64,000 nucleotides of DNA from Paraphysomonas bandaiensis (lineage: Eukaryota; Protista; Chrysophyceae), in NCBI GenBank assembly GCA_965644295.1, contig CBFFRP010000446.1, forward strand, positions 46,330-110,329. The letters run 5' to 3'. Within the stretch, counting starts at the first letter, position 1, and each line of letters opens with the position of its first letter. A model generated the notes under the pieces. That model saw only the letters and a program-made list of their open reading frames with translations, did not search any database and was not told the origin of the DNA. This document shows, one piece after another, positions 1,955 through 64,000 of this stretch. The translations under genes were made by a program, and so were the position numbers.

Positions 1955-2322
1955 ATTAATGAAAGCTATGATCCGATTTTGTAGAATATGAAGTTATATT
2001 GCAATGATAAGCAGTGTTGTAGTTCTGGTGTATAGTGGGGTGAATAATGTAGAATGTAACTGTGATAAGTAAGAAGTATTGAGCCGAATTAAGACAATTT
2101 CATGATTATAAAAGATAGGAAAAAATGTAATTCTATTCTTCATCCAAATTTTATGGCAGAACTATAATTATACACGTATCATATATATATATGATATATG
2201 TTATCGCAACGGCGAACGAGAAAATGCCAAATCGTCAGAGTAGGAGTAATCACGACAGTTGAGGTCGTATATATGACTGCCTAATATAAACAAGCTATCT
2301 GAGTAATATACTTAAGGTCCTC

Positions 2323-2970
2323 TTACTTTTCCTCGTCCCAGCCATCTTCACCATCGATGTCTGAGTCATCAAAATAGCCGCCATCGCTATCGGAACTCAG
2401 CCACCATATCCCGCCCGTCCAAATATGATCCCAACTCTTACTGCTGTCCACTTCTCCATCCCACTCTTCAACTTCGTCTACTTCGACATCACCATCTCCA
2501 TCATGATCAATCCACTGACCCATCAAGTGCTCCACTCGCAAAGTGCCAAGAGTCATACCTTCAAACAGACTATCCGGGCTATCGCTTCCTTCGCTCAGGT
2601 CCCAAAATTCACCATCCCAACAAACTACTGGCCCAGCATCATCATGTTCTAAAGCATGATATTCTTCCAGCTCCATATCTGCTTCTATTATAGAACTGTC
2701 TGTAACCTTCTCGCCAACTGCGATTTCACCTCCTGCTCTACTCACACAGATATTGGAGGGGTCAAATTCACGGGAACTATTCACTAGTAACGAATGAGAT
2801 AACTTCAGGCGGTCGTCATTCACTGACGGCGATATGAACCCTCTGAATAACACACTCGACACTCGACTCAAAATACACCACGAAACAGGACACGACAGAG
2901 ACGCTGGAGACTCATGTCTGTCTTTGTGCAGCCACGACACATACACCTTTCGACTGAACCACCAAAACAT
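2323..2970 (-). CDS. Hypothetical acidic, Trp-rich protein (start uncertain)
   Basis: 215-codon open frame with D/E/W-rich C-terminus, divergent from the PUB gene across the TATG array; no family recognised. Confidence 0.45.
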   Translation of the reverse strand: MFWWFSRKVYVSWLHKDRHESPASLSCPVSWCILSRVSSVLFRGFISPSVNDDRLKLSHSLLVNSSREFDPSNICVSRAGGEIAVGEKVTDSSIIEADMELEEYHALEHDDAGPVVCWDGEFWDLSEGSDSPDSLFEGMTLGTLRVEHLMGQWIDHDGDGDVEVDEVEEWDGEVDSSKSWDHIWTGGIWWLSSDSDGGYFDDSDIDGEDGWDEEK

Positions 2971-3044
2971 CCCTTAATATATACACCCCCCTCTAAACAT
3001 AACACACCCACGCAAGTGCTACATGTCCACATCCATAACATGAA

Positions 3045-3492
3045 TGTATGTATGTATGTATGTATGTATGTATGTATGTATGTATGTATGTATGTATGTA
3101 TGTATGTATGTATGTATGTATGTATGTATGTATGTATGTATGTATGTATGTATGTATGTATGTATGTATGTATGTATGTATGTATGTATGTATGTATGTA
3201 TGTATGTATGTATGTATGTATGTATGTATGTATGTATGTATGTATGTATGTATGTATGTATGTATGTATGTATGTATGTATGTATGTATGTATGTATGTA
3301 TGTAGGTATGTATGTATGTATGTATGTATGTATGTATGTATGTATGTATGTATGTATGTATGTATGTATGTATGTATGTATGTATGTATGTATGTATGTA
3401 TGGATGTATGTATGTATGTATGTATGTATGTATGTATGTATGTATGTATGTATGTATGTATGTATGTATGTATGTATGTATGTATGTATGTA
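3045..3492. repeat. (TATG)n microsatellite, ~450 bp
   Basis: Near-perfect array with two interruptions (~3305, ~3403). Confidence 0.98.
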
Positions 3493-3547
3493 TACGGTGT
3501 GCATCATGTGGAGGTTGTTCTGTTGAGTGTCAGTTATCGTTGCAGTC

Positions 3548-4733
3548 ATGTCAGAGATATCTAAAACAAAGAGGGCAGTGGACGATCTGTGTAGCAGGCT
3601 GTATGATCACAGGCACGTGTCTGCTATGAGTGCGGAGGATCTGCATGCCATGCAGAGCACTCTGCAGACTCTGCGCGACAGATGCGATGCCTTCATAGGC
3701 AAGATAGACCTCAAAGATCCCGTCACGCAGGCCCCCAGATACGGCCCCAATATGGTCAAGAAGATTACCGATCTCTCGGATAGTATCGACGCGCTTATAG
3801 GGGACTGCAACGAGGCTGTGTCTCAACTGCCCCCTCAAGATGAAGCTGTGCACGAAGACCCTGCTGACGAGATGCCCTCTTCAGTCCCAGACCCTTCTGA
3901 CCACACACATGCACCTGTGGACATCACTACTCCACCTGAGACACAGACACAGTCTACGAAATCGATGCTCTTATCTGATCGCGTTGCTGAAGAAGAGAAG
4001 GAAGCGTTGAGTCAACAAGCAGCATTGATTCGAGCTCGGAAGAATAAAGAAGAGCAAGAAGCCAAAGAAGCACAGGGGTGTGAGTTATACCGTTTACGAT
4101 GGGTGACGCATCATATAAATACTCGCTGGAAATCGGGTGGTATCTCTGAAGCGCTGACTGCCCTTGCTAGTGAGATCAAGCGCTCTGACGACGAGATTAT
4201 TCAGAATGTTAAAATTAGAGAAGCTGTAGAACTTGTATCAAATATTTTAGATAACGTGCACAAGAAACCCGATGATGAAAAGCTTCGGCGAATCCGATCG
4301 AATCACCCAGTTATACATGTGAGTGATTGGATAGTGTTATTATCGTTCACTTATGTGAGATCATCGAAGTTTCGTAGTGTATGCTAACCGTGTATTGTGT
4401 ATGGAGTAGGAAAAGCTTACTAGTCATGGAGAGTCTGGATTAGGATTGCTGATCTCAGTTGGATTCCTCGCCAAGGCAACATACTCCAATGGCACACCTA
4501 TCATCGATGAACCACCCATAGGCGCTCCTCCTAATGTAAGTGAGGAGGATGTGCCTAGAGCTATAACGGCTATTGCGGACCCGGGATACATGTATACAGT
4601 CATGCTTGAGATGTTCGAGCCAAGCATAGAGCCTGCTGAAGGGTCTGCGAATTGGATACGTTGGTTTGATGGCTTGGAGGAGTCTAAGAAACAGTTGCAA
4701 TTGTTTTTGGATAGTCTAAATATGTCTAAATAG
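3548..4733 (+). CDS. PUB-domain (p97/CDC48-binding) protein, 2 exons
   Basis: ILDNVHKKPDDEKLRRIRSNHPVI...LLISVGF matches the PUB signature; intron ~4319-4409. Confidence 0.7.
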
Positions 4734-5020: not shown

Positions 5021-5205
5021 ATATATATATGAAAGTATTATTATTAGCAATAGGCGCCGAGAATCAGCAACAGATAGGTAGCTAGATGACTAGATAAAAA
5101 CTAGTCAAGCTAGAGATGGACTTATACCTGTAACTAACTAGTACAAAAGCTATATAACACTACGAAAGCAGATTGTACGTCGCCGCAAGCACCAAGGTGC
5201 ACACT
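5021..5205 (+). repeat. Dispersed repeat family A, 5' arm only
   Basis: ATTAGCAATAGGCG...CTACGAAAGCAG...GTCGCCGCAAGCACCAAGGTGCA is shared with copies at 19.9-20.2, 38.8, 46.6 and 47.2 kb. Confidence 0.75.
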
Positions 5206-11131: not shown

Positions 11132-11500
11132 TATCTGATTATTTAACAATAGGCATATAAGTGTTAAAACTAAACAGAAATTTATCTATCGCCAAGGTGC
11201 GACCACCTCCTCTCTCTGTCCTTAACGTGCGCTAGCCCGGATGCTTGACTTCAAGTAGGCAGCTCAAACCCCAGATACCTTGAGGTGAACCCTGTCCCGG
11301 ATGCCTTTTTATTCGTCAAGGCTCAACGACGTCTACTACACAAGTGACACTTATTAGTGTCCCTTGTACCACACAAGCATTCGGCTATGAGTGGGCAGAA
11401 CAATATCTGCTGACTATATATGCCGCTCACGGTAGTTTCCTGGAGAAATATCTCCGGTACTTATTCCCAGAACAAAGGTGCGAGTCCGACTTTGTTGGCA
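11132..11500 (+). repeat. Dispersed structured repeat family A, near-full core
   Basis: Collinear with 19657-20019 (-), 30563-30917, 38676-38920 (-) and 46570-46998. Confidence 0.9.
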
Positions 11501-12393
11501 TTCCATTGGAAGCATTACTTTGATTTTTCTTTTGTACTCTAAGTCCAAGGCTTCCATAGATACCTCATCAAAGTTGATCTCAAAATATGACTCAACCTTT
11601 TGTTCTTTCGTGTCAATTGTTTAACACAAAAAGGAAAAGGAAGATCACTCACTATCACTCAGTGATACGCATTCCACGCTTGAGGTGATATTTTGCGCTC
11701 AACATATTTCCCATCGCACCACCACTCGCTGGGCAGCCAAACTTTATCTTTCCATCCATCGTGTTTGATTGCATGCTGCGACAGGTTGCGCGACCCATAG
11801 TGTTAAATTACGCACCTCTTCGTTATTAGCATTTATTTTCTTAAAGAACACTCCTGCAATGACGTCTGGTACCAGAATTCCGCTCATATCACTAATTCAT
11901 TACATGAATTATTATGTGAGATAGTCTTATGGATATTACATCAATCTTCCATATTGATCGTAAGCATTGGATTTTCGTGTAATAAAAAATGCCGTTTTTT
12001 AAATTTTCACTGTCAAAATATGACATGCAAAATTTTTTATCATTAATTGGAACAAGCTAGAGTCAATTATAATTGCAAATACGATTTGATATCCCAATTT
12101 CAATACTTGACAATTAATTTCTTCGCAGCCCTCGTAACTCTTAACTACTGATATGAACTCCAATGACGTCCAATTCCATCAAGTATATTGCATGTATTAT
12201 TCATGTATCTACGTATGCAATCTTCACGGATACTACACTTTCTACATATACAAACTTAACTTTTTAGAGCAGTGATTATTTACATGATGCTCTGCACATC
12301 ACAGCATTCAAGTCCACCGATATATATATGATAGCTATATATCATATTATGGTTACACTCATCATAAACATCTAACATGGGAGCATCACAAGC

Positions 12394-19656: not shown

Positions 19657-20019
19657 CCCTCGACAAAGTCGGACTCGCACCTTTTCGTGGTGTTCTGTGG
19701 GATAAGCACAGGAGAGATTCTCTCTGGGAAACTAACGTGAGCCGCAAACATAGTCAGCAGATATTGTTCTGCCCACTCATAGCCGAATGCTTGCGTGGTA
19801 CAAGGGACACCAATAAGTGTCACTTGTGTAGACGTCTTTGGGCCCTGACGAATAAACAGGCATCCGGGACAGGGCCCACCTCAAGGGTAGCCGGGGTATT
19901 GGGCTGCCTGCTGCAGTCAAGCCTCCGGAATGTTCACCTTAAGAACTCAGAGCGGAAGTGGTAACACCTTGGTGCTTGCGGCGACTCACAAGCAGCTTCC
20001 GTAGCGTTAAATAGTAGGA
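19657..20019 (-). repeat. Dispersed structured repeat family A, best-preserved copy
   Basis: Starts A|TCCTACTATTTAACGCTACG on the minus strand; multiple perfect stems. Confidence 0.9.
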
Positions 20020-20114
20020 TATATATGAAAGTCTGATTATTACATGAGTACGGTTGCGTACAGAAACTAGTTTATGTCTATAGACTAGCTATTAACTAGA
20101 TTTGCTATATACTA

Positions 20115-20655
20115 CTAGTGGCGGGCAACCGTCTTGGGACTGCTTGTGCATCGCTGCGAGCACCATGGTGCAACCGTCCCTTGTAGTGAGGTTGGTCGGG
20201 GGGTCTACCTTTGGGCAATGTGTCTGGCGGGCCTGTGCCATGGATTATGTGGGGTGTGTGTGAGGCGAGATGTATATGAGAGTGCAAGTCGGTGGTGGAG
20301 ATGGTGCTGGTTGTTGAGGTAGGGTTTCGGCCACAAGTAAGGAGGAGTTGTTTCCGGAGTGGTTGCGCTTGCCTCTGGGTGTGGAGTGGATGTCGCCTGG
20401 AGTAGCTGGAGTACTTTTGGTGTCGGGTGGGTATCCTGGGGCTGGCGTTGCTTTGCGTGTGTCGGGACCGGTGTCGCCGGTGCCGTGTCTACGTTGTGGT
20501 GTCTGTGTCCCCTATTGCGAAGCATGCGGAGCCCTCCATCATATAGGGGGAGTAGGATAGAGGCGATGGATTTTTCTAGGGCGTGGAATTGATGTTCGAG
20601 CAGTGAGCTGGATATGTGGCGTCCGAATGCGTCGGCCATTTGTTAAATAGTAGGA
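20115..20655 (-). mobile_element. Putative non-autonomous Helitron-like element carrying a GC-rich ORF fragment
   Basis: Minus strand reads A|TCCTACTATTTAAC...CCACTAG|T (5'-TC, 3'-CTAG, A/T target, no TSD); imperfect subterminal hairpin; ATG 16 nt after the 5' end opens the 20639-20205 ORF. Confidence 0.45.
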
Positions 20656-20929
20656 TAAAAAAGTGTGTTATTATGGTCAAGTTAGTTTGCTTGTAAATTA
20701 TGTCGAATAAGTATCTGAATATATAAAACGTAAATAATGGAATTATATTTAGGGAGCACAGTGGAGCATAAGCGACTCCATTTTTCCTACTGTCTTAAGC
20801 CATTCAACAATTCTACCAAAAGATGTGTATTGCATTACTCAAAATTACGTCGCTGAAAAATATAGAATATACACTATTAAATATCAAATAACATCGAACA
20901 AATCGAGAAAACAAATGTGACAACTAGTG

Positions 20930-27634: not shown

Positions 27635-28750
27635 TTAATTGAAGTGATTTCTTATTTGACTAATACCAGTACAACGAACACGATAGTTATATAACCTATG
27701 AATAGTAGCAAGTCTTATTCCACGAATATCTTGATTGAATGGTAGAGGCATAAGTAGACGTCTGTAAACCTTCTCCACGGCTCCCATCCCCCACTCACAA
27801 GATTGTCGTAATGATGTTATGGAATTGCTTAGACGGTTTAGAGCTGGTCTAGCGAGAGGGTGAGCCTTCTCAATGTCTCCATCCTTAACCGGTGTAATTA
27901 TTCTACCAAAACATTTGCCGCTTACCGGAAAAGCAGAATCAGATACAACTCCATGGCCCTTTAAGCAGAACTCATCTTTACAGATTTTCTCTTGGAAGGG
28001 CCTATACATATCTCCATCATTCCAGGATCCTACAAAATTGTGCTTGCCCCAACAGATGCACCCACTGACATCGAAGCATAGACATCCTCTTATCAAAGTA
28101 GCATGAAGCCACCCGTTATCCATGGCATTTTGCAGATCAGCTCTGGTAGGCTTCTGAACCCTATAATTCTTGCAATCAATTAAGCCCCACCTGCCAGATA
28201 TATCCGGATGTAAAGCTTGAACCTTTAAACCCCATTCGTATTGCATCTTAAAAGATGGCCACCGAAATTCAGCTTCACGCAATGTCTTTAATGTAGCAAG
28301 CAGTGCTTCCTCAGCCTTTCTGAGATGCCGAGATAGACTGGAAGGAACAATGCCGAACATTAAACACAGAGATTTATATGACATTGAATCAGTATAAAAG
28401 ACCAGCACCAGTCCCAAACGATCTTCACTGTACGGTAATGCGCTGGGTCGTCCACCTCCACCGCGATTGTTAGCAATCACTTCAAACTTTTCAAACTCAA
28501 GCAACAATTTGCTAAAAGCACTTCGAGTAAGTGACGTCATGTTTACAAAGTCTTCGTCGTCTCCATGTTCATACAGTCCACGCCAAGCAGATTCTTGTAT
28601 CGGTCGAAGAGCGTGTTTCGTTAAGTAGCTCCTCTCCCGTAGAGTCATTCGTATGCGAAGAAGAGTCAGCAGCAGTCTCTGCTTTCGACGTCTCCTCTTT
28701 CTTAACCACCAATACATAAGCATCAAGTACATGTACTTCATCATATACAC
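27635..28750 (-). mobile_element. PIF/Harbinger transposase (DDE_Tnp_4 / HARBI1-like)
   Basis: HTH region (SLCLMFGIVPSSLSR), GLIDC, GSWNDG, VSDSAFP, SLRQSCEWGMG, LYNYRVR; intronless; TIRs not located. Confidence 0.85.
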
Positions 28751-30562: not shown

Positions 30563-30917
30563 CTATACCTGACATCTGCCGAATTCAGGATTTTGAGTCC
30601 TTAAGGCGAACAGCCCAAATGCTTGACTTCTGCAGGTAGGATAATACCTCGGCCGGTAACCCTTCAGGTGGGCCTACTCCCAGATGCCCTTGAGGTGTTG
30701 AGGTGGGCCCATTCCCTGTTTAATCGTCAGGGTCAAACGACGTCTACACAAATGACACTCATATTAGTGTTCCTTGTACCACACAAGTATTAAGCTATGA
30801 GTGAGCAGAAAATTATCTGCTGACTCTATATGCGGCTCACGTTAGTTTCCCGGAGAAATCTCTCCGATACTTATCACTCAGAACACGAAATGGTGAGAGT
30901 CCGACTTTGTTGAGGGA
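30563..30917 (+). repeat. Dispersed structured repeat family A copy
   Basis: Collinear core with a local internal duplication (~30660-30712). Confidence 0.9.
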
Positions 30918-38486: not shown

Positions 38487-38675
38487 ATACCTATACTTTA
38501 ACTCCCTCTTATTTTCTTGTATACTTCCTTAAAGTATCAGTTTCTTTTTCGCACCACAACGCCACAAACCAATCCCAATACATCAGTGATTTACTTCATT
38601 CACCAATGTAACATTGCCAACCATATACTCATCCAATGACAGCATTGAAACTTGCACATCGACATTCTCGAAATA

Positions 38676-38920
38676 GTAAGTGTCACTTGTATAGACATCT
38701 TTGGACCTTGATGATTAAGCAGACATTCGGGAGTGGGCTCACCTAAGAGCATTTGGGGAATGGGCCAACCTTAAGGACCCAAAATTCTAAAGTCAGCAGA
38801 TGTTAGGTATATATCAACATTCTTCTTGCTCACTGCGTTTGCTTTGTGATGAACAAGCAGCTTTTGTAGCGTTAAATATAGTCAAGCACTGACACTTAAA
38901 CGCCTATTTTTAATAATAAG
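38676..38920 (-). repeat. Dispersed structured repeat family A, partial copy
   Basis: TAAGTGTCACTTGT..AGACATCTTTGG..CAAGCAGCTTTTGTAGCGTTAAATA matches the 19.8-20.0 kb copy. Confidence 0.8.
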
Positions 38921-41994: not shown

Positions 41995-42398
41995 TACAAG
42001 GAACTAGGGGGGCGGGAGGATGGCTCTGATCATATTACAGGACATGTCTGTGTGAGAGGGCGGGGTGTGAGTATGTGAGTGTGTCGAGGGACTGCACTGT
42101 GCTGTACTGCACTGTACACGCAGAGGGTGTACAGAACACCAGTGCGTGTCTGTAGGAGTATGTGTATGTACAGTACTACTGTATATGTATATGTATACCA
42201 GCCATATGTAGAGGTACACATACAGCAGTGTGTGGACATGTACGTATACCAACTATGGGACAATCCTACGAAGTACAGCCGTATACCTCTACACATGTAT
42301 ATGCGTGTACACCTGTACACATGTACACAGTGTGTGTACACCTCGGCGTACACACACCGCGCCCCTCAGCTCTCAGCTGCTTCATGGTCGTGCTGTGC

Positions 42399-42559
42399 TG
42401 TAATATGGGGATCTGCAGCAGCAGATGATACAAGTCAGTGTTGTAATATGAGCATCTGCAGCAGCAGATGATACAAGTCAGTGTTGTAATATGAGCATCT
42501 GCAGCAGCAGATGATACAAGTCAGTGTTGTAATATGAGCATCTGCAGCAGCAGATGATA
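42399..42559. repeat. 43-bp minisatellite, ~3.7 copies
   Basis: Unit ATCTGCAGCAGCAGATGATACAAGTCAGTGTTGTAATATGAGC at 42411, 42454, 42497 and partial at 42540. Confidence 0.95.
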
Positions 42560-46569: not shown

Positions 46570-47400
46570 TCTTACTATTAGCAACAGGCGTGTAAGAGTC
46601 TAAAATAATGTAGCAAAACAATTTTACTGACTAGTGCTTAACTCTGATATCCTACGATTTAACGCTACGAAAGCTGCATGTGCGTCACCGCAAGCACTCT
46701 ATCACTCAAAGTAAGCGTAGTGACCAAACAGAATGCATAAACGCATAAACATATACCTGACATCTGCTGGCTTCAGGATTCTTGAGCCCTTAAGGTGAAC
46801 ATCCCGGAGGCTTGACTTTAGACCTTCCTGGATGCCCTTCAGAGGAGCCTATTCCTGGATGCCTGTTTATTTATCAAAGCCCAAAGACATCTACAATATC
46901 TGCTGACTATATGTGCGGCTCACGTTAGTTTCCAGGAGAAATATCTCCGGTACTTATCCCCCAGAACACCACGAAAGAATTGAGACTGACTATGTTGTGA
47001 GTGTAATATATTTATACATTCTGCTTGATCACTGCCTTTACGTTGTTGTTGTACCATATGATGCTTGTGGTGATGTTGTACAAAAGCAGATTTCATAACG
47101 TTAAATAATAGCAGGATATATATCTGAGATGATATCCGGGCTACTTCACCTTAAGGCGAAAGTGGTTGCACCTTGGTGTTTGCAGTAATGTACAAGCAGA
47201 TTTCGTAGCGCAAAATGCTAGGATGTCAGAGTTAAGCACTAGTAGTTAGTTAAATTGTTTTGCTACATTAGTCCTGACTCTTACAGTAACGCCTATTATT
47301 GCTAATCATCAGACTTCACTACTGCCACTAGTTAGTTAAATTGTTTTGTTACATTAGTTCTGACTCTTAAACGCCTATTGCTAATTGTAAGACATTCACT
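46570..47400. repeat. Family A cluster: + copy 46570-46998 facing - copies 47058-47120 and 47145-47400
   Basis: 46575-46700 is the reverse complement of ~47170-47310; the + copy lacks ~70 nt of the core. Confidence 0.85.
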
Positions 47401-54849: not shown

Positions 54850-55044
54850 AAATTTCGTCACTTATTGTTTATATCAAAATATACTGCTATGGCTTCTGCA
54901 TTCGATTATTGATGTTTTAAGATGGAGGAATATGATGAGCATGAGGTAGATGGTAATATAGGAAAGGAAGTAGCGAGTAGTGTTACATAAGTATCAAGAC
55001 CACGATCAGATATAGCGCAGGAATGTACTGTGATAACCGGTAAA

Positions 55045-55505
55045 TGTTGGGAAATGCTCATTTTACTTAGATCAAAGAGAGATTAAGTTGTTAGACTAGA
55101 TAGATTTATTAATATCGTTTACACGAATTGTGTTAAACAACACAAGCTCGTTTTGTGCCATGCATAAATCACTACTTCTGTAGACCTTTCGCTACTAAAC
55201 ATATCTTGAAAGAGCAAACTATTTCAGTTTTCTCAATATCATAACAGCATCTACACATCACCATACTTCACTGTATTCTCGTACATTGTCTTCAAGTACC
55301 ACATTGAATATACTAGGATACAGTCCATATTCTAATACTCCCACTCAATGTAGAATGCAGTGATACGAAACAACAATGAGTACAGTGATCTTCATGCTAT
55401 AAACTAGTCTCATAGGTAAAATAGATGTGAAATCTTATCAAGATACATATATAACTAGCAGTCAACTAGATATATAGTTATGTGGGATTCTCACCCACTA
55501 AAACA
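55045..55505 (-). repeat. 3' LTR of Copia copy 1
   Basis: Direct repeat of 60207-60667; inner boundary inferred from TGTT/AACA symmetry and an upstream purine-rich tract. Confidence 0.85.
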
Positions 55506-55510
55506 CACCT

Positions 55511-58500
55511 TTAACCTCTTCGGGGTCGCTTCTTCTGCTGCTCCTCAACTCTGGTTGACACACTTCTCTTAACCCCGGTAATAGTTTTCTCATGACGACT
55601 GAAAAGTTTCGTTGACAATGCCTTCGTGAAAATATCAGCCGCCATATCATCCGTCGACACATGAATCAACTTTGCCGTAGGAAATTTTCCATTTACATGC
55701 TCTCTCACCCAGTGATACTTGATGTCTATATGCTTCGACCTCTTATGATACACAGGATTCTCGGAGAGATCTTTCGCACTCTTGCTATCCATAAAGAATG
55801 GAGTCGGCTTCGCAACTAAGAGCCCGAGCTCCTTGAACACCCCCCGAAGCCACACCAGTTCTTGCATAGCCGCATACTCCGCCATATATTCAGATTCCAT
55901 GCTCGAAGTTGCAACTGTGGTCTGTAGTTTAGACTGCCAGGCCAATGCGCCTGCACATAAGAACACAATGTATCCTGTTGTCGATCGCCGAGTCAGTCTA
56001 TCACCAGCCCAATCTGAATCACTGAACACATGTAAGTCGAACTCACTCCCACTGAATCTGATGCCCTCATCAATTGTTCCACGCAAATATTTCAATAAGT
56101 GAATCGCCAGTTTGCACGATGCATATGTCGGACAACTACTAAATCGAGACAATAACCCCACTGCATAAGCCAGATCAGGTCTAGTATGCATTGCTAGATA
56201 CAACACTGCTCCAATAATTTGCCGATACGGAAATGAGTCAACCCACTGCTTCTGCTCCTCCGTAAGTTCACGTTCCTCTGCCAACAGATCCTGAACATTA
56301 GTAGGTAGTGGGGCCTCCTTATTCTTACTACTCTTTCCCATAACTGAGCTGAATTTCTTGATAATATTCTTAGCATACTCAGATTGATCTAACATATACC
56401 AATTTTCTCCTCTGGTTATCCTGATGTTCAGAAATCGCTTACACACTCCCAGATCATGCATCTCGAATGTTTCACAGAACCTACGCTTTACGCTTTCCAA
56501 GTAAGTCAGATCAGCGGATGCAATTATGATATCATCAACATATATCAATAATAAATGCAGTTTTCCGTTACTCCATCGCATATACAAACACGTATCCAAA
56601 ATACACGGAGTAAAATGCAATGATTTAATAAACTTGTCAATATGTTTATTCCACTGTCGCGGTGAAGATCGCAGTCCATACAATGCCTTGATTAGTTGAA
56701 AACACCATCCAGCTAGTAATTCCTCATCTGGTGGAGGTGCCATATACACGTCATCCTCCAGATCTGCATAGCAAAATGCGGATGATACATCTAATTGATG
56801 CACATGCATCTGTAACATAAACGCAATCGCTAACACTAGTCTAATGGTTATACCCTTAACCACTGGAGCGAAAGTGGACGGCTCCTCCTCCTTCTTCTCT
56901 TGGAGATTTCCTAATGCCACTAGCCGAGCCTTGTACTTTACTATATTCCCTAGTATGTCTCGCTTCACCGTATGCACATATTTCGCTCTAACTAATTTCA
57001 CTCCGCTTGGAATTTTCACGATCTTCAAGACACGTCTTTTCAGCAATGATGTCTTCTCCACCATTCGAGCTTTTCTCCATTGTTGATACTGTGGAGATCT
57101 CTCTGCCTCGGCATATGAATTTGGTATCTTGATATCTTCTGTCTCTGCATGGTTAAGATCAATATTATGCGCATCCGGTACTTCAACCATATTAATCTCT
57201 CCTAAAACTGACGCGTTTGCCAGTCTCCGCTGCAGCCGTTTGCGTCGGACCCGACCATCACCATCTAGTTCAATCGGTCGACGAGGTATATAAGAACCCG
57301 TACCTTGCTCATCCTGAGCACGCACATCGTGCGTTGTGGGAGGAGCCCCGCTCACAACCCCAGACTCATAGTCTTCAGAGGTCTGCAACCTCACAGCTGT
57401 CTCCTGACAGGTTGGGTCAGGACTCTCCTGTAACCCTCCAGGTCTTCCCTGGTCCAGCACCCTGGCTGGCATAGTACTCAGGGCGTCCCCCTTTCCTATA
57501 TATCCGGTATTCCCGGGAGTTTCTGCAGTCATTCGCACTACGTCCTCGACGTGAATCGGCACCCGGTGCTCGATATGCTTCCGACCTGCAGTTACCAGAG
57601 ATCGATAGGCTACTATTACCCCCTTTCGTTCTACTACTCTCGTGGTCTTGTAGAGAAGACCATCCTCATCATCAATATGATATGTACCTTCTAAGCCCGC
57701 ATAGTCAGACACAATTTTCGGTCTCTCGGCCTCCTTCACTCGAAGAGCATCTATCTCAGCGAAATAGCTCTCCGAGCGTGACGGTATGGACTCATCAGTT
57801 AATACATGTACCGACGTGACGACCCTATCAGTCGCAGGTAGATATACATCATATCCTACCTTTTCATCTGAATATCCTATCAGATATCCGATAAGGGCCT
57901 TGTCGTCCCAGTCTTTCCGTCGATCCGCCTTTGTAGTGAGGACATACGCACGACACCCCCATACTCTGAGATATTTCAGGTTGGGAGCCTCACCAGTCAA
58001 AAATTCAAGAGGGGACATATACCCCTTCGCTGTCTTTGTAGGCAATCGAATTAATATGTACCTGGCTGCCATGTAGGCATCTAGCCAAAACTGTGAAGGC
58101 AATCCTGACTGAATCAGCATCGCTAATGTCATCTCACCACAGGTCCTGAATTTCCGCTCCTCAATCGCGTTCATCTCAGGAGAGTCCGTAGAGCTCCACG
58201 TATGTTGATAGCAACCCTGTGACCTAAGATATTGTCGCAGCTCATCACATATTAGCTCCCCTGCTCCATCTGCATGGTAATGATGCATTTCTAATTTGTA
58301 CCTTTTCACATCTCCTTCAAAAATCTTCTTGAAAACCTGCAGTACCGATGACCCAGTCCTATGAACAAGCCCTTCCGACCAGAACATCCGACTGGCATGG
58401 TGTGTTAGTTTGAGCACATATATTTCCCCTCCTCGAGCTGGACAATTTAAGTATACTGCTATATCGGCCGAGAAATTTGGACGAACGGAGTCCTCATCCT

Positions 58501-60223
58501 TTGTCCGAAAACTTACTCTGGTGATCTTCGCCCTGGCGCATACATCACATAGACACTGTTCTTTGGAAACACGTTTCGAGAGATGTTTTCGTTTCAGTCC
58601 AGTCCCAATAATTAGCATTCTTTTGTGGGCTTCTACCAACGCATGCTTGTTAAAATGACCCGCTCTCCTATGTAACAGCTCCAGTTCATCCTCACCCGTA
58701 CGGTCACTGAGATTTACTTCTGAATCACTGGATGTCGATACGTCTGGAAGCTCCAATAACTGCTGTGTTGGCACAGCAGTCATTCCATTCTTCATAGGTC
58801 CCTCCAACACCAGCTCATCCGTATTTCTGTCATATATCTGTATACCATACCATACAGTAAATCGATATCCCATATCGTTCAACTTCCGTCCAGAACAAAG
58901 ACACCGATTTATCTGACTTGATACCTCAATGTTCTTCCATGCTCCACGGGAACCTACACTCGTGACGCATATCTCTGACCCTTTTTTCGAACCATTAATA
59001 ACCTTTGATGTGTGCATATGACTATCAAGTATATTCACATCATTTATCAAAAACATTGATGACGAACAACAGGTATCAATGTATGTATAGTGAATATCCT
59101 CATGCACACTACTGCATATATTCGTCTCATACACATTACATGACAAGTGATACTCTTCCTGTTGCTCGATCATATTTGCTTCGTCATCGTCAGACAAATC
59201 CGCTGGCTCTCCACGCCTGATGTTTTCAACTGTAAGTAGTCTTTTGTCTGGTTTCCTTCCATCTTGAAACCTCACAGCCTTGCTCTTGCTTTGCGAGTAC
59301 TTCTTTTTCGATGCTGGACAATCGATGGCAAGATGTTCCTTTGACTTACAATTTCTGCACCCAGTATATTCGGCACTTCCAGGTCGCTGCCCTGTAATCT
59401 CTGTATCCTTCTTCATCGGCTTCTTCTTACCGTTGTTCTTCTTACGATGATCCCTCTCTCTGCGATATCGTTTCTTACTGTCTATCAGGTTCAGCTCCTC
59501 CACTCTTTTACGCTTCTTCTCCAACGCTTCCTTCCCAGCCATAGTATCATCATAGCCTTCTATCTTACGTGATACAGTTACATAATTAACATCATCATCC
59601 ATCAAGTATAATCCAACTCTCAGTTGAGCATACTCTTCATTGAGCAAGCCTTCTCGTAGTCGACTTGTTTTTGATACCTCCGAGATATCCTGCTGCTGCT
59701 CCTGTAGTTCCTTCAGCAGTAGTTCGAACCGTAGTACGTAGTCCTTCGCCGTCTCCTCCGGACGCATACGGAAAGAACCATATTGAGTTAAGAGGTCACT
59801 GATCCTATTTTGCTTCCCTCCAGCAAAACACTTCTTCAACTCATCAATCATTACATGTGTTTTGAACCTGTTTACACCACTCCCTTCTGCCTTGAACGCT
59901 TTGTGGGTAAGATGGAATTTACGCAGCGCTTTCGGGGAATGCTGCACCGCATCCCTGCAGTAAGAATAAGCTATGGCGTTCGCCTTCCAATACCTCTTCA
60001 CAGCCTGTCTGTACGCCTTCTCCTCCATCAACGTAAGTGGCTGCTCCCCGAAGTCGCTCTCCTTAGGTGGCAGTTCCACCGCTACCTCGCTTTGTTCCTT
60101 CCTCATAAGGAATGTCTCGAAGTCCTCAATCCATTGTTCAACGTTAGTCTCGTTGAACTGAGGAACTACTCCTCTATCCTCCTTCTCTCCTCCTCGCTCG
60201 CTACCATGTTGGGAAATGCTCAT
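55511..60223 (-). CDS. Copia gag-pol polyprotein (gag CCHC, protease, integrase, RT, RNase H)
   Basis: CRNCKSKEHLAIDC; YIDTCCS; HRRAGH..CDVC; HADGAGE..EMNAIEER; KARLVALG, LYGLRSSPRQW, YVDD; SDSDWAG..SKHIDIKYH..ADIFTKAL. Confidence 0.97.
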   Translation of the reverse strand: MSISQHGSERGGEKEDRGVVPQFNETNVEQWIEDFETFLMRKEQSEVAVELPPKESDFGEQPLTLMEEKAYRQAVKRYWKANAIAYSYCRDAVQHSPKALRKFHLTHKAFKAEGSGVNRFKTHVMIDELKKCFAGGKQNRISDLLTQYGSFRMRPEETAKDYVLRFELLLKELQEQQQDISEVSKTSRLREGLLNEEYAQLRVGLYLMDDDVNYVTVSRKIEGYDDTMAGKEALEKKRKRVEELNLIDSKKRYRRERDHRKKNNGKKKPMKKDTEITGQRPGSAEYTGCRNCKSKEHLAIDCPASKKKYSQSKSKAVRFQDGRKPDKRLLTVENIRRGEPADLSDDDEANMIEQQEEYHLSCNVYETNICSSVHEDIHYTYIDTCCSSSMFLINDVNILDSHMHTSKVINGSKKGSEICVTSVGSRGAWKNIEVSSQINRCLCSGRKLNDMGYRFTVWYGIQIYDRNTDELVLEGPMKNGMTAVPTQQLLELPDVSTSSDSEVNLSDRTGEDELELLHRRAGHFNKHALVEAHKRMLIIGTGLKRKHLSKRVSKEQCLCDVCARAKITRVSFRTKDEDSVRPNFSADIAVYLNCPARGGEIYVLKLTHHASRMFWSEGLVHRTGSSVLQVFKKIFEGDVKRYKLEMHHYHADGAGELICDELRQYLRSQGCYQHTWSSTDSPEMNAIEERKFRTCGEMTLAMLIQSGLPSQFWLDAYMAARYILIRLPTKTAKGYMSPLEFLTGEAPNLKYLRVWGCRAYVLTTKADRRKDWDDKALIGYLIGYSDEKVGYDVYLPATDRVVTSVHVLTDESIPSRSESYFAEIDALRVKEAERPKIVSDYAGLEGTYHIDDEDGLLYKTTRVVERKGVIVAYRSLVTAGRKHIEHRVPIHVEDVVRMTAETPGNTGYIGKGDALSTMPARVLDQGRPGGLQESPDPTCQETAVRLQTSEDYESGVVSGAPPTTHDVRAQDEQGTGSYIPRRPIELDGDGRVRRKRLQRRLANASVLGEINMVEVPDAHNIDLNHAETEDIKIPNSYAEAERSPQYQQWRKARMVEKTSLLKRRVLKIVKIPSGVKLVRAKYVHTVKRDILGNIVKYKARLVALGNLQEKKEEEPSTFAPVVKGITIRLVLAIAFMLQMHVHQLDVSSAFCYADLEDDVYMAPPPDEELLAGWCFQLIKALYGLRSSPRQWNKHIDKFIKSLHFTPCILDTCLYMRWSNGKLHLLLIYVDDIIIASADLTYLESVKRRFCETFEMHDLGVCKRFLNIRITRGENWYMLDQSEYAKNIIKKFSSVMGKSSKNKEAPLPTNVQDLLAEERELTEEQKQWVDSFPYRQIIGAVLYLAMHTRPDLAYAVGLLSRFSSCPTYASCKLAIHLLKYLRGTIDEGIRFSGSEFDLHVFSDSDWAGDRLTRRSTTGYIVFLCAGALAWQSKLQTTVATSSMESEYMAEYAAMQELVWLRGVFKELGLLVAKPTPFFMDSKSAKDLSENPVYHKRSKHIDIKYHWVREHVNGKFPTAKLIHVSTDDMAADIFTKALSTKLFSRHEKTITGVKRSVSTRVEEQQKKRPRRG
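60192..60206 (-). other. Primer-binding site, initiator-tRNA-like
   Basis: TGGTAGCGAGCGAGG abuts the LTR end; it implies a tRNA ending ..GCUACCA (U72, A73) as in eukaryotic tRNA-iMet. Confidence 0.6.
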
Positions 60224-60667
60224 TTTACTTAGATCAAAGAGAGATTAAGTTGTTAGACTAGATAGATTTATTAATATCGTTTACACGAATTGTGTTAAAC
60301 AACACAAGCTCGTTTTGTGCCATGCATAAATCACTACTTCTGTAGACCTTTCGCTACTAAACATATCTTGAAAGAGCAAACTATTTCAGTTTTCTCAATA
60401 TCATAACAGCATCTACACATCACCATACTTCACTGTATTCTCGTACATTGTCTTCAAGTACCACATTGAATATACTAGGATACAGTCCATATTCTAATAC
60501 TCCCACTCAATGTAGAATGCAGTGATACGAAACAACAATGAGTACAGTGATCTTCATGCTATAAACTAGTCTCATAGGTAAAATAGATGTGAAATCTTAT
60601 CAAGATACATATATAACTAGCAGTCAACTAGATATATAGTTATGTGGGATTCTCACCCACTAAAACA
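60207..60667 (-). repeat. LTR shared by tandem Copia copies 1 and 2
   Basis: Flanked by the PBS/gag of copy 1 on the left and the pol end of copy 2 on the right. Confidence 0.9.
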
Positions 60668-63600
60668 CACCTTTAACCTCTTCGGGGTCGCTTCTTCTGC
60701 TGCTCCTCAACTCTGGTTGACACACTTCTCTTAACCCCGGTAATAGTTTTCTCATGACGACTGAAAAGTTTCGTTGACAATGCCTTCGTGAAAATATCAG
60801 CCGCCATATCATCCGTCGACACATGAATCAACTTTGCCGTAGGAAATTTTCCATTTACATGCTCTCTCACCCAGTGATACTTGATGTCTATATGCTTCGA
60901 CCTCTTATGATACACAGGATTCTCGGAGAGATCTTTCGCACTCTTGCTATCCATAAAGAATGGAGTCGGCTTCGCAACTAAGAGCCCGAGCTCCTTGAAC
61001 ACCCCCGAAGCCACACCAGTTCTTGCATAGCCGCATACTCCGCCATATATTCAGATTCCATGCTCGAAGTTGCAACTGTGGTCTGTAGTTTAGACTGCCA
61101 GGCCAATGCGCCTGCACATAAGAACACAATGTATCCTGTTGTCGATCGCCGAGTCAGTCTATCACCAGCCCAATCTGAATCACTGAACACATGTAAGTCG
61201 AACTCACTCCCACTGAATCTGATGCCCTCATCAATTGTTCCACGCAAATATTTCAATAAGTGAATCGCCAGTTTGCACGATGCATATGTCGGACAACTAC
61301 TAAATCGAGACAATAACCCCACTGCATAAGCCAGATCAGGTCTAGTATGCATTGCTAGATACAACACTGCTCCAATAATTTGCCGATACGGAAATGAGTC
61401 AACCCACTGCTTCTGCTCCTCCGTAAGTTCACGTTCCTCTGCCAACAGATCCTGAACATTAGTAGGTAGTGGGGCCTCCTTATTCTTACTACTCTTTCCC
61501 ATAACTGAGCTGAATTTCTTGATAATATTCTTAGCATACTCAGATTGATCTAACATATACCAATTTTCTCCTCTGGTTATCCTGATGTTCAGAAATCGCT
61601 TACACACTCCCAGATCATGCATCTCGAATGTTTCACAGAACCTACGCTTTACGCTTTCCAAGTAAGTCAGATCAGCGGATGCAATTATGATATCATCAAC
61701 ATATATCAATAATAAATGCAGTTTTCCGTTACTCCATCGCATATACAAACACGTATCCAAAATACACGGAGTAAAATGCAATGATTTAATAAACTTGTCA
61801 ATATGTTTATTCCACTGTCGCGGTGAAGATCGCAGTCCATACAATGCCTTGATTAGTTGAAAACACCATCCAGCTAGTAATTCCTCATCTGGTGGAGGTG
61901 CCATATACACGTCATCCTCCAGATCTGCATAGCAAAATGCGGATGATACATCTATTTGATGCACATGCATCTGTAACATAAACGCAATCGCTAACACTAG
62001 TCTAATGGTTATACCCTTAACCACTGGAGCGAAAGTGGACGGCTCCTCCTCCTTCTTCTCTTGGAGATTTCCTAATGCCACTAGCCGAGCCTTGTACTTT
62101 ACTATATTCCCTAGTATGTCTCGCTTCACCGTATGCACATATTTCGCTCTAACTAATTTCACTCCGCTTGGAATTTTCACGATCTTCAAGACACGTCTTT
62201 TCAGCAATGATGTCTTCTCCACCATTCGAGCTTTTCTCCATTGTTGATACTGTGGAGATCTCTCTGCCTCGGCATATGAATTTGGTATCTTGATATCTTC
62301 TGTCTCTGCATGGTTAAGATCAATATTATGCGCATCCGGTACTTCAACCATATTAATCTCTCCTAAAACTGACGCGTTTGCCAGTCTCCGCTGCAGCCGT
62401 TTGCGTCGGACCCGACCATCACCATCTAGTTCAATCGGTCGACGAGGTATATAAGAACCCGTACCTTGCTCATCCTGAGCACGCACATCGTGCGTTGTGG
62501 GAGGAGCCCCGCTCACAACCCCAGACTCATAGTCTTCAGAGGTCTGCAACCTCACAGCTGTCTCCTGACAGGTTGGGTCAGGACTCTCCTGTAACCCTCC
62601 AGGTCTTCCCTGGTCCAGCACCCTGGCTGGCATAGTACTCAGGGCGTCCCCCTTTCCTATATATCCGGTATTCCCGGGAGTTTCTGCAGTCATTCGCACT
62701 ACGTCCTCGACGTGAATCGGCACCCGGTGCTCGATATGCTTCCGACCTGCAGTTACCAGAGATCGATAGGCTACTATTACCCCCTTTCGTTCTACTACTC
62801 TCGTGGTCTTGTAGAGAAGACCATCCTCATCATCAATATGATATGTACCTTCTAAGCCCGCATAGTCAGACACAATTTTCGGTCTCTCGGCCTCCTTCAC
62901 TCGAAGAGCATCTATCTCAGCGAAATAGCTCTCCGAGCGTGACGGTATGGACTCATCAGTTAATACATGTACCGACGTGACGACCCTATCAGTCGCAGGT
63001 AGATATACATCATATCCTACCTTTTCATCTGAATATCCTATCAGATATCCGATAAGGGCCTTGTCGTCCCAGTCTTTCCGTCGATCCGCCTTTGTAGTGA
63101 GGACATACGCACGACACCCCCATACTCTGAGATATTTCAGGTTGGGAGCCTCACCAGTCAAAAATTCAAGAGGGGACATATACCCCTTCGCTGTCTTTGT
63201 AGGCAATCGAATTAATATGTACCTGGCTGCCATTTAGGCATCTAGCCAAAACTGTGAAGGCAATCCTGACTGAATCAGCATCGCTAATGTCATCTCACCA
63301 CAGGTCCTGAATTTCCGCTCCTCAATCGCGTTCATCTCAGGAGAGTCCGTAGAGCTCCACGTATGTTGATAGCAACCCTGTGACCTAAGATATTGTCGCA
63401 GCTCATCACATATTAGCTCCCCTGCTCCATCTGCATGGTAATGATGCATTTCTAATTTGTACCTTTTCACATCTCCTTCAAAAATCTTCTTGAAAACCTG
63501 CAGTACCGATGACCCAGTCCTATGAACAAGCCCTTCCGACCAGAACATCCGACTGGCATGGTGTGTTAGTTTGAGCACATATATTTCCCCTCCTCGAGCT

Positions 63601-64000
63601 GGACAATTTAAGTATACTGCTATATCGGCCGAGAAATTTGGACGAACGGAGTCCTCATCCTTTGTCCGAAAACTTACTCTGGTGATCTTCGCCCTGGCGC
63701 ATACATCACATAGACACTGTTCTTTGGAAACACGTTTCGAGAGATGTTTTCGTTTCAGTCCAGTCCCAATAATTAGCATTCTTTTGTGGGCTTCTACCAA
63801 CGCATGCTTGTTAAAATGACCCGCTCTCCTATGTAACAGCTCCAGTTCATCCTCACCCGTACGGTCACTGAGATTTACTTCTGAATCACTGGATGTCGAT
63901 ACGTCTGGAAGCTCCAATAACTGCTGTGTTGGCACAGCAGTCATTCCATTCTTCATAGGTCCCTCCAACACCAGCTCATCCGTTTTTCTGTCATATATCT
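60668..64000 (-). mobile_element. Second tandem Copia internal region, disrupted and truncated by window end
   Basis: Near-identical to 55506-58839; 1-bp deletion in a C run (~61003) and TAC>TAA at 63234. Confidence 0.93.

Follow-up and report, generated by a model that had tools for sequence, protein, structure and literature searches.

What kind of element occupies positions 19657-20019 of the window, the 64,000-nucleotide stretch of Paraphysomonas bandaiensis DNA analysed here, is the question raised by a GC-rich, non-coding segment that recurs several times in its surroundings. The sequence-only reading of the locus had described it as a highly structured module, a candidate mobile RNA or ribozyme spread by a mobile element that it could not assign to a known family. 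The two segments 19657-20020 and 20657-20685 together very probably constitute one copy of a non-coding, non-autonomous, SINE-like retroposon carrying the 3' tail of a large LINE, hereafter LINE-C. The earlier description holds in that the element is dispersed, non-coding and apparently moves through RNA, but its kind can be named, a LINE-dependent SINE-like retroposon. The window comprises eukaryotic nuclear DNA with a G+C content of 31-52% per kilobase, mostly 40-47%, and includes gene fragments of TCP-1, lipin (LNS2), C2-domain and arginine-methyltransferase type, together with a Copia-type element and a PIF/Harbinger-type ORF.

The alignment of 29 copies with their flanks, collected from the genome assembly of 62.5 Mb in 669 contigs, delimits a full conserved unit of ~485 nt, with both ends common to all 29. 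The ~360-450-nt core previously regarded as the unit corresponds to its 293-nt 5' body. At least 40 genomic copies display 92-95% identity, these being the scored matches, 40 of 3,213 first-look candidates. The sense strand starts with CCCTCAAC and reaches its 3' terminus at ...AATAAAAGACTTTCAA(TATA). The 5' end is exact in the full copies, reading CCCTCAACAA... in sense and ...TTGTTGAGGG on the opposite strand, and the other end reads TTGAAAGTCTT... on the antisense strand, preceded by 0-4 nt of TA/TATA. Target-site duplications of 10-16 bp surround 19 of 28 copies with one mismatch allowed, compared to 0.7% of mismatched flank pairs drawn from different copies, and several further copies preserve a duplication with at least two mismatches. 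These duplications abut the CCCTC end exactly; at the opposite end 0-4 nt of TA/TATA intervene, ATA being found in 19 of 27 copies, and this variable TA/TATA sometimes belongs to the duplication itself. The element lacks terminal inverted repeats, the best terminal match spanning 6 nt and being equalled by 818 of 2,000 shuffles (41%). The combination of variable-length duplications and no inverted repeats suggests that the element is inserted by a LINE through target-primed reverse transcription. The longest ORF in the six frames comprises 86 codons, in agreement with the earlier observation that no conserved ORF is apparent.

The architecture of the element is two-part, with a 293-nt element-specific 5' body and a ~190-nt LINE-derived 3' tail. 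In the window, the body (positions 1-293 of the element) extends over 19657..19949 on the + strand, starts with CCCTCGAC, displays 95.7% identity to a full copy (L002) over 300 nt, and shares the sharp 5' boundary common to the 29 full copies. The LINE-C-type tail of this copy comes next, its first ~71 nt occupying 19950..20020 (+) with 93% identity to the LINE-C 3' end (positions 522-594 of a 713-nt query). This portion includes, at 19974..19993 (+), a hairpin with a GNRA loop (GCTTGCG-GCGA-CTCACAAGC), which carries one stem mismatch in the window copy and belongs to a module counted 2,501 times in the genome. Positions 19657-20020 hold the first ~365 nt of the ~485-nt element, and the tail resumes at 20657..20685 (+) with a remnant that a local alignment to the full element places at positions ~366-396. 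Beyond 20685 homology to the element is lost, the last ~90 nt being either missing or decayed. Between the two segments, inside the tail, lies a ~620-nt, 5'-truncated 3' end of a second LINE, LINE-B (20021..20641, - strand), with 91% identity to L064:1771-2428, a stretch located downstream of AP-endonuclease (APE) and reverse transcriptase (RT) matches on contig C426. Direct reading of the sequence discloses the same 15-bp repeat, GTTAAATAGTAGGAT, on its left (20006..20020) and on its right (20642..20656). The segment 20021-20641 is recognized as a LINE-B insertion because this 15-bp duplication flanks it and because other copies of the same LINE end are truncated at different points. What had been taken for a separate arm-only copy at 20021-20178 is the first ~160 nt (+) of this insertion.

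The link to a LINE relies on the tail: aligned in the sense orientation of the LINE, the terminal 190 nt of the element and of LINE-C, a young LINE of the same genome, agree at 88% identity. Reverse-transcriptase matches in the genome include families with RT matches of 840-880 nt in frames of 2,000-3,700 codons. In the LINE-C copy of contig C433, the ORF stop is followed by the element end 245 nt downstream; 39 other LINE-C places, with 98-100% identity to the ORF end and tail, all stop at the same base, so the junction of LINE-C and tail is not a chance insertion. The distance from the RT to the shared 3' boundary downstream is 2,553-2,557 nt in 14 LINE-C copies, and 12 copies begin at the same point, 16 nt ahead of the start codon. 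Flanked by a 12-bp duplication, TCCTTGTGGCTT, the C433 copy (G000:C433:106088-114788) measures 8,701 nt and contains one ORF of ~2,810 codons. Its domain order is SET, AP-endonuclease and reverse transcriptase, all in one frame, with the SET domain (Pfam E 1.4e-8; loci L063, L067, L065) placed just upstream of the AP endonuclease and RT, and with ~900 N-terminal and ~790 C-terminal residues that have no Pfam match. An autonomous, RT-encoding partner of the kind anticipated earlier is thus present, and its 3' tail is common with that of the element.

Because the LINE-C sense strand ends in the same ~190-nt tail, the sense strand of the element corresponds, for the copy at 19657-20020, to the + strand of the window. 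The reverse orientation, which would start at TTGAAAG and finish at GAGGG, is suggested by the exact GAGGG boundary but is rejected because the LINE-C sense strand ends in the reverse complement of that supposed head. The strand labels given previously are inverted relative to the RNA strand, which at 19657-20019 is + and had been given as -. LINE-B is a sister family of LINE-C, with APE and RT matches within a 2,479-codon frame on contig C426. The final codons of that frame (L064:236-2335, G000:C426), which stops only ~95 nt before the element 3' end, enclose the tail hairpin (L064:2268-2313), so that RNA signal and coding sequence overlap.

The size of the family was assessed by whole-genome exact-pattern counts, allowing up to 3 mismatches, with reversed-pattern controls giving 0. 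The counts comprise (i) 1,378 for a 25-mer of the 5' head, (ii) 438 for the body-tail junction of the ~485-nt form, (iii) 2,501 for a 25-mer of the tail hairpin, LINE ends included, and (iv) 132 for a diagnostic 27-mer of a 1.2-kb non-coding relative. The 3' parts outnumber the 5' parts, 2,501 tail hairpins (LINE ends included) versus 1,378 heads, whereas the first-look candidates show the opposite trend for the two element ends, 1,603 versus 1,996, both values being lower bounds with common words skipped. Young copies diverge 2-3% from the consensus in the body. The head gave 0 matches in an exact-pattern scan of metagenome contigs, a scan that perhaps did not extend to the window's own genome or one very close to it.

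The 293-nt head recurs in the 1.2-kb relative, which further contains ~850 nt of different sequence and a variant tail, and is flanked by 13-16-bp duplications; here the head includes a 27-nt internal duplication and the tail hairpin loop is GCAA. Copies are located at L061:1882-3086, L062:8724-9930 and L018 (G000:C451) ~1967-3023. An identical 27-mer in 84 of the ~132 copies indicates that this relative is very young. At G000:C421:69007-73370 three such elements in the same orientation lie within 4.4 kb (heads at 69007, 70400 and 72175; ends at 70202, 71595 and 73370), a tandem-like arrangement unusual for retroposition. The relative also accounts for two rejected partner candidates. An RT ORF adjoining the tail on contig C123 (L061:599-1881; G000:C123:495098-496380) belongs to a different element, of a further retroelement family, and is split by a 1.2-kb element with a 16-bp duplication, TATCCCCAAAGTAATT. 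For a 3,731-codon ORF on contig C644, the tail found 11 kb downstream is that of a 1.2-kb element inserted in a SINE copy.

Within the window, the recurrence reported from the sequence is confirmed, as 19657-20019 matches 11192-11497, 30594-30917, 38677-38771 and 46647-47013 at 73-90% identity. Alignment assigns these matches to (i) an older head-bearing copy at 11192..11501 (-), covering element positions ~1-316 with 84.5% identity; (ii) an older head copy at 30564..30916 (-), covering positions 1-351 with 82% identity and continuing like the 1.2-kb relative; (iii) an older 5'-truncated copy at 38674..38878 (+), from position ~155, whose alignment runs on into a tail; and (iv) an older copy at 46640..47001 (-) with an internal deletion, in which the 5' end and the tail hairpin are kept. 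The arm pieces mentioned earlier are likewise found, at 5021-5201, 20021-20178 and 47134-47323, not as separate arms but as LINE-derived 3' tails or LINE ends. Besides the LINE-B insertion described above, alignment reveals a tail-only fragment at 5021..5201 (-), covering element positions 307-488 with 72% identity, and another at 47134..47323 (+), covering LINE-C 3' end positions 526-713, which represents a 5'-truncated LINE or SINE insertion. Several old copies, including those at 11192-11501 and 30564-30916, keep the 5' end and display no recognisable tail, an unexpected configuration that speaks against target-primed reverse transcription unless the tails have decayed or are older variants.

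Other repeats of the window are recorded here as separate observations. Positions 55044-63971 comprise two tandem Copia-type ORFs of 1,570 and 751 codons, both with RVT_2, and 300-nt stretches repeated with 100% identity 5,161-5,162 nt apart; the arrangement is either a tandem LTR-element array with common LTRs or an assembly duplication. Long (TACA)n-type arrays with period 4/8, at 1-130 and 2911-4100 and thus separated by ~3 kb, are oppositely oriented, their arms being 99% complementary over 97 nt. A 371-codon ORF at 27635-28750 (-) contains a DDE_Tnp_4 domain of PIF/Harbinger-type transposases, and a 43-nt tandem repeat with 3-4 units of 96-100% identity is located at 42395-42559.

One alternative, proposed from the sequence itself, regards the entire ~360-nt core as a structured RNA or ssDNA module with a function of its own, a mobile ncRNA or large ribozyme, its fold being under selection and preserved by compensatory changes; the folding and substitution data make it very improbable. 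The complementary segments on which it was founded are present, most of them being used in the minimum-free-energy fold, and local hairpins recur in most copies. However, the folding energy is unexceptional, -149.9 kcal/mol for the sense strand of the full element, corresponding to a z of -1.38 versus dinucleotide shuffles and equalled by 11 of 100 of them, with a z of -0.97 for the antisense strand, and does not support the designation as highly structured. In a pairing test that applied the body-consensus fold (91 pairs) to 12 diverged copies, changes in paired columns are disruptive as often as conservative, with 63 one-sided changes that keep the pair versus 72 that break it and 6 versus 8 for double changes, and the substitution rates are similar in paired (0.110) and unpaired (0.144) columns. 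Pairing of the body lies marginally above that of column shuffles (90.9% versus 90.2%, reached by 7 of 500), as does the covariation score (0.126 versus 0.117), a margin within the range for related sequences without structural constraint. The notion that pairing survives sequence change beyond chance consequently finds no confirmation in these copies, and its examples reduce to one-sided G.U/G-C or U.G/U-A changes or to hairpin resizing: AAGCA/TGCTT is a one-sided U.G to U-A change, and the GAGAGA stem is the resizing of a single palindromic hairpin, CCGGAGAGA-UUC-UCUCUGG versus CCGGAGA-UAUU-UCUCCGG. In several of the long-range helices, moreover, one strand belongs to the element-specific body and the other to the LINE-derived tail. 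Since most copies are inactive from the moment of insertion, only source-gene differences could carry a covariation signal; between the old and young consensus, 13 of 293 positions are changed, evenly distributed along the body, and RNAalifold on the gap-rich old copies gives an uninformative consensus. The only module with support for conserved pairing is the tail hairpin, GCUUGCG-GNRA-CGCACAAGC, in which the loop takes the forms GCGA, GCAA, GUGA and GUAA; the LINE-C type closes it with G-C and the LINE-B type with A-U. In this hairpin 92% of the cells are paired, and the observed covariation is reached by 14 of 500 shuffles. A derivation from a MITE, another DNA transposon or a ssDNA element of the Helitron or IS200/IS605-like kind would be in keeping with a short, non-coding, abundant and AT-flanked sequence in a window that also holds a PIF/Harbinger-type DDE ORF (27635-28750), but is scarcely conceivable for an element that has no terminal inverted repeats, shares one end with a LINE 3' UTR and commonly occurs as tail-only truncated copies. 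Its duplications vary in length, where a MITE would show a fixed one; for Helitron and IS200-IS605 types no target-site duplication is expected at all, and the partner that shares the end is an APE/RT LINE.

If the SINE-like reading is adopted, the head remains to be accounted for, and two further explanations concern its source and transcription. Rfam offers no match to the head and no relevant family, neither for the whole window at gathering score nor for the full copy and its 5' 126 nt at E up to 10; likeness to tRNA, 5S, 7SL or snRNA is equally absent at E up to 10. An origin from the 5' end or interior of a LINE finds no support, the head showing no similarity to the whole 8.7 kb of LINE-C or to the LINE-B 5' region. 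The element displays the hallmarks of a SINE or LINE-dependent retroposon: it is short and non-coding, has variable duplications, shares its 3' end with an APE- and RT-bearing LINE, and its 3' parts are the commoner ones. A SINE in the strict sense would require a tRNA, 5S or 7SL head with an internal Pol III promoter, neither of which was found, hence the term SINE-like. A classical Pol III SINE, with a head from a cellular small RNA too diverged or lineage-specific to be recognized by Rfam, is improbable. The precise 5' end, the high copy number and the head/tail architecture would suit it, and Rfam is thin on stramenopile small RNAs; against it, the sense strand contains neither an A-box nor a B-box, no small-RNA match appears in the searches just described, and Pol III would be expected to terminate at the runs TTTT (26-29) and TTTTT, the latter ~35 nt from the 3' end. 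These internal runs argue against transcription by RNA polymerase III. The other explanation, which is compatible with the main reading as an addition to it, invokes a self-cleaving HDV-like ribozyme in the first ~90 nt of the body, which would free the RNA from read-through host transcripts and fix its CCCTC 5' end. We consider it doubtful, although less so than the Pol III origin. It would explain the 5' end that is exact in all full copies, and it fits the T-runs that make Pol III unlikely. A nested double pseudoknot can be drawn from nucleotide 1, with P1 at 1-6/40-45, P3 at 22-25/33-36, P4 at 53-71 and P2 at 14-20/83-88; the P1 and P4 pairs also occur in the consensus fold, and the changes between old and young consensus within the fold are confined to the P4 hairpin, which is still paired. 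L1Tc/NARTc and R2 provide precedents (PMC3185411, PMC3414825). The modelled fold is nevertheless not convincing, in that it needs a 3-nt linker between P3 and P1 and an 11-nt J4/2, has no G-C P1.1, begins with C rather than G, and is rejected by an already-relaxed descriptor whose false-positive rate is 0.85% on shuffles and 2.6% on random starts in the genome. Neither an HDV-type nor any other Rfam ribozyme is detected at E up to 10 in the 126 nt on both strands, conservation of the first 90 nt between subfamilies is no higher than elsewhere in the body (4 of 90 versus 9 of 203 positions differ), and the partner LINEs start with other sequence. A broader proposition places a self-cleaving RNA, either a very divergent HDV-like fold or an undescribed class, at the start of the 293-nt head, which is counted 1,378 times and is common to at least three non-autonomous families, namely the ~485-nt form, the 1.2-kb relative and older forms. 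It is in our view similarly unlikely; if true, this chrysophyte would harbour a SINE-like family that lacks a promoter, is headed by a ribozyme and parasitises a SET-domain LINE.

For the LINE-dependent SINE-like retroposon favoured here, the following mode of propagation may be envisaged. The LINE-C protein would bind the shared tail in trans through the GNRA hairpin and the end motif ...AATAA(TC)AGAC(A/T)TTCA, a putative recognition suggested by analogy with LINEs of the stringent type (PMC1636434, PMC4176376). It would then nick a TA-rich target, often at a TAT able to pair with the UAU(A) of the RNA 3' end, and its RT would prime on that 3' end and copy the element RNA in place. The expected outcome would be 10-16-bp target-site duplications and many 5'-truncated, tail-only copies. 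The ATA that follows the element 3' end in 19 of 27 copies fits the microhomology expected at a priming nick. The exact 5' end, the variable TA/TATA at the 3' end and the excess of tail modules over heads agree with the proposed orientation. The window copy was split at a later stage by the 5'-truncated LINE-B insertion.

The element is an ordinary kind of genomic parasite and probably operates in the manner of the classical LINE/SINE pairs, in which the 3' tail is shared. It accounts for a large share of the seemingly structured repeats in the genome, with ~1,400 heads and ~2,500 tails in 62.5 Mb; once it is recognised, such repeats should no longer be mistaken time and again for mobile ribozymes, group I-like cores or guide RNAs. 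The compact candidate recognition signal, formed by the GNRA hairpin and the end motif, together with the unusual SET domain of the LINE, would make the pair suitable for the study of how that LINE chooses templates; the source of the head and its transcription constitute the only question of wider interest. Among the searchable papers, none deals with transposable elements of this organism or with a chrysophyte SINE-like family, and no such clean LINE-SINE pair is described for chrysophytes.

Comparison with known systems highlights both the similarities and the particular features of this pair. As in the stringent LINE/SINE pairs, exemplified by eel UnaL2/UnaSINE1 and the zebrafish ZfL2 family (PMC1636434, PMC4176376), a short non-coding element has its 3' end in common with the 3' UTR of a LINE from the same genome, with a conserved hairpin near the 3' end, no poly(A), variable duplications and 5'-truncated copies. 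Important differences are that (i) the head is not tRNA-derived and has no recognisable Pol III promoter, (ii) the shared tail spans ~190 nt, nearly the whole LINE 3' UTR, its hairpin being a putative signal, and (iii) the partner LINE, of unusually large size, has a single ORF that includes a SET domain. The tRNA-related SINEs of the oomycete Phytophthora infestans (PMC3429519) represent the SINE class in another stramenopile lineage and are unrelated in sequence to the element. On the other hand, NARTc/L1Tc and RIME/ingi of trypanosomatids and R2 SIDE comprise non-autonomous derivatives of non-LTR elements that bear an HDV-like ribozyme at the 5' end (PMC3185411, PMC4035085, PMC3414825). The present element resembles them in being non-coding and LINE-dependent, in its fixed 5' end without a tRNA head, and in a candidate 5' self-cleaving fold, although this fold is non-canonical and unsupported by covariance models. 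Whereas NARTc, RIME and R2 SIDE are deletion derivatives with both ends common to their LINE, the head described here shows no similarity to the 5' end or interior of LINE-C or to the 5' end of LINE-B. Lacking a Pol III-type head, the element is in that respect closer to NARTc, RIME or R2 SIDE than to the classical SINEs.
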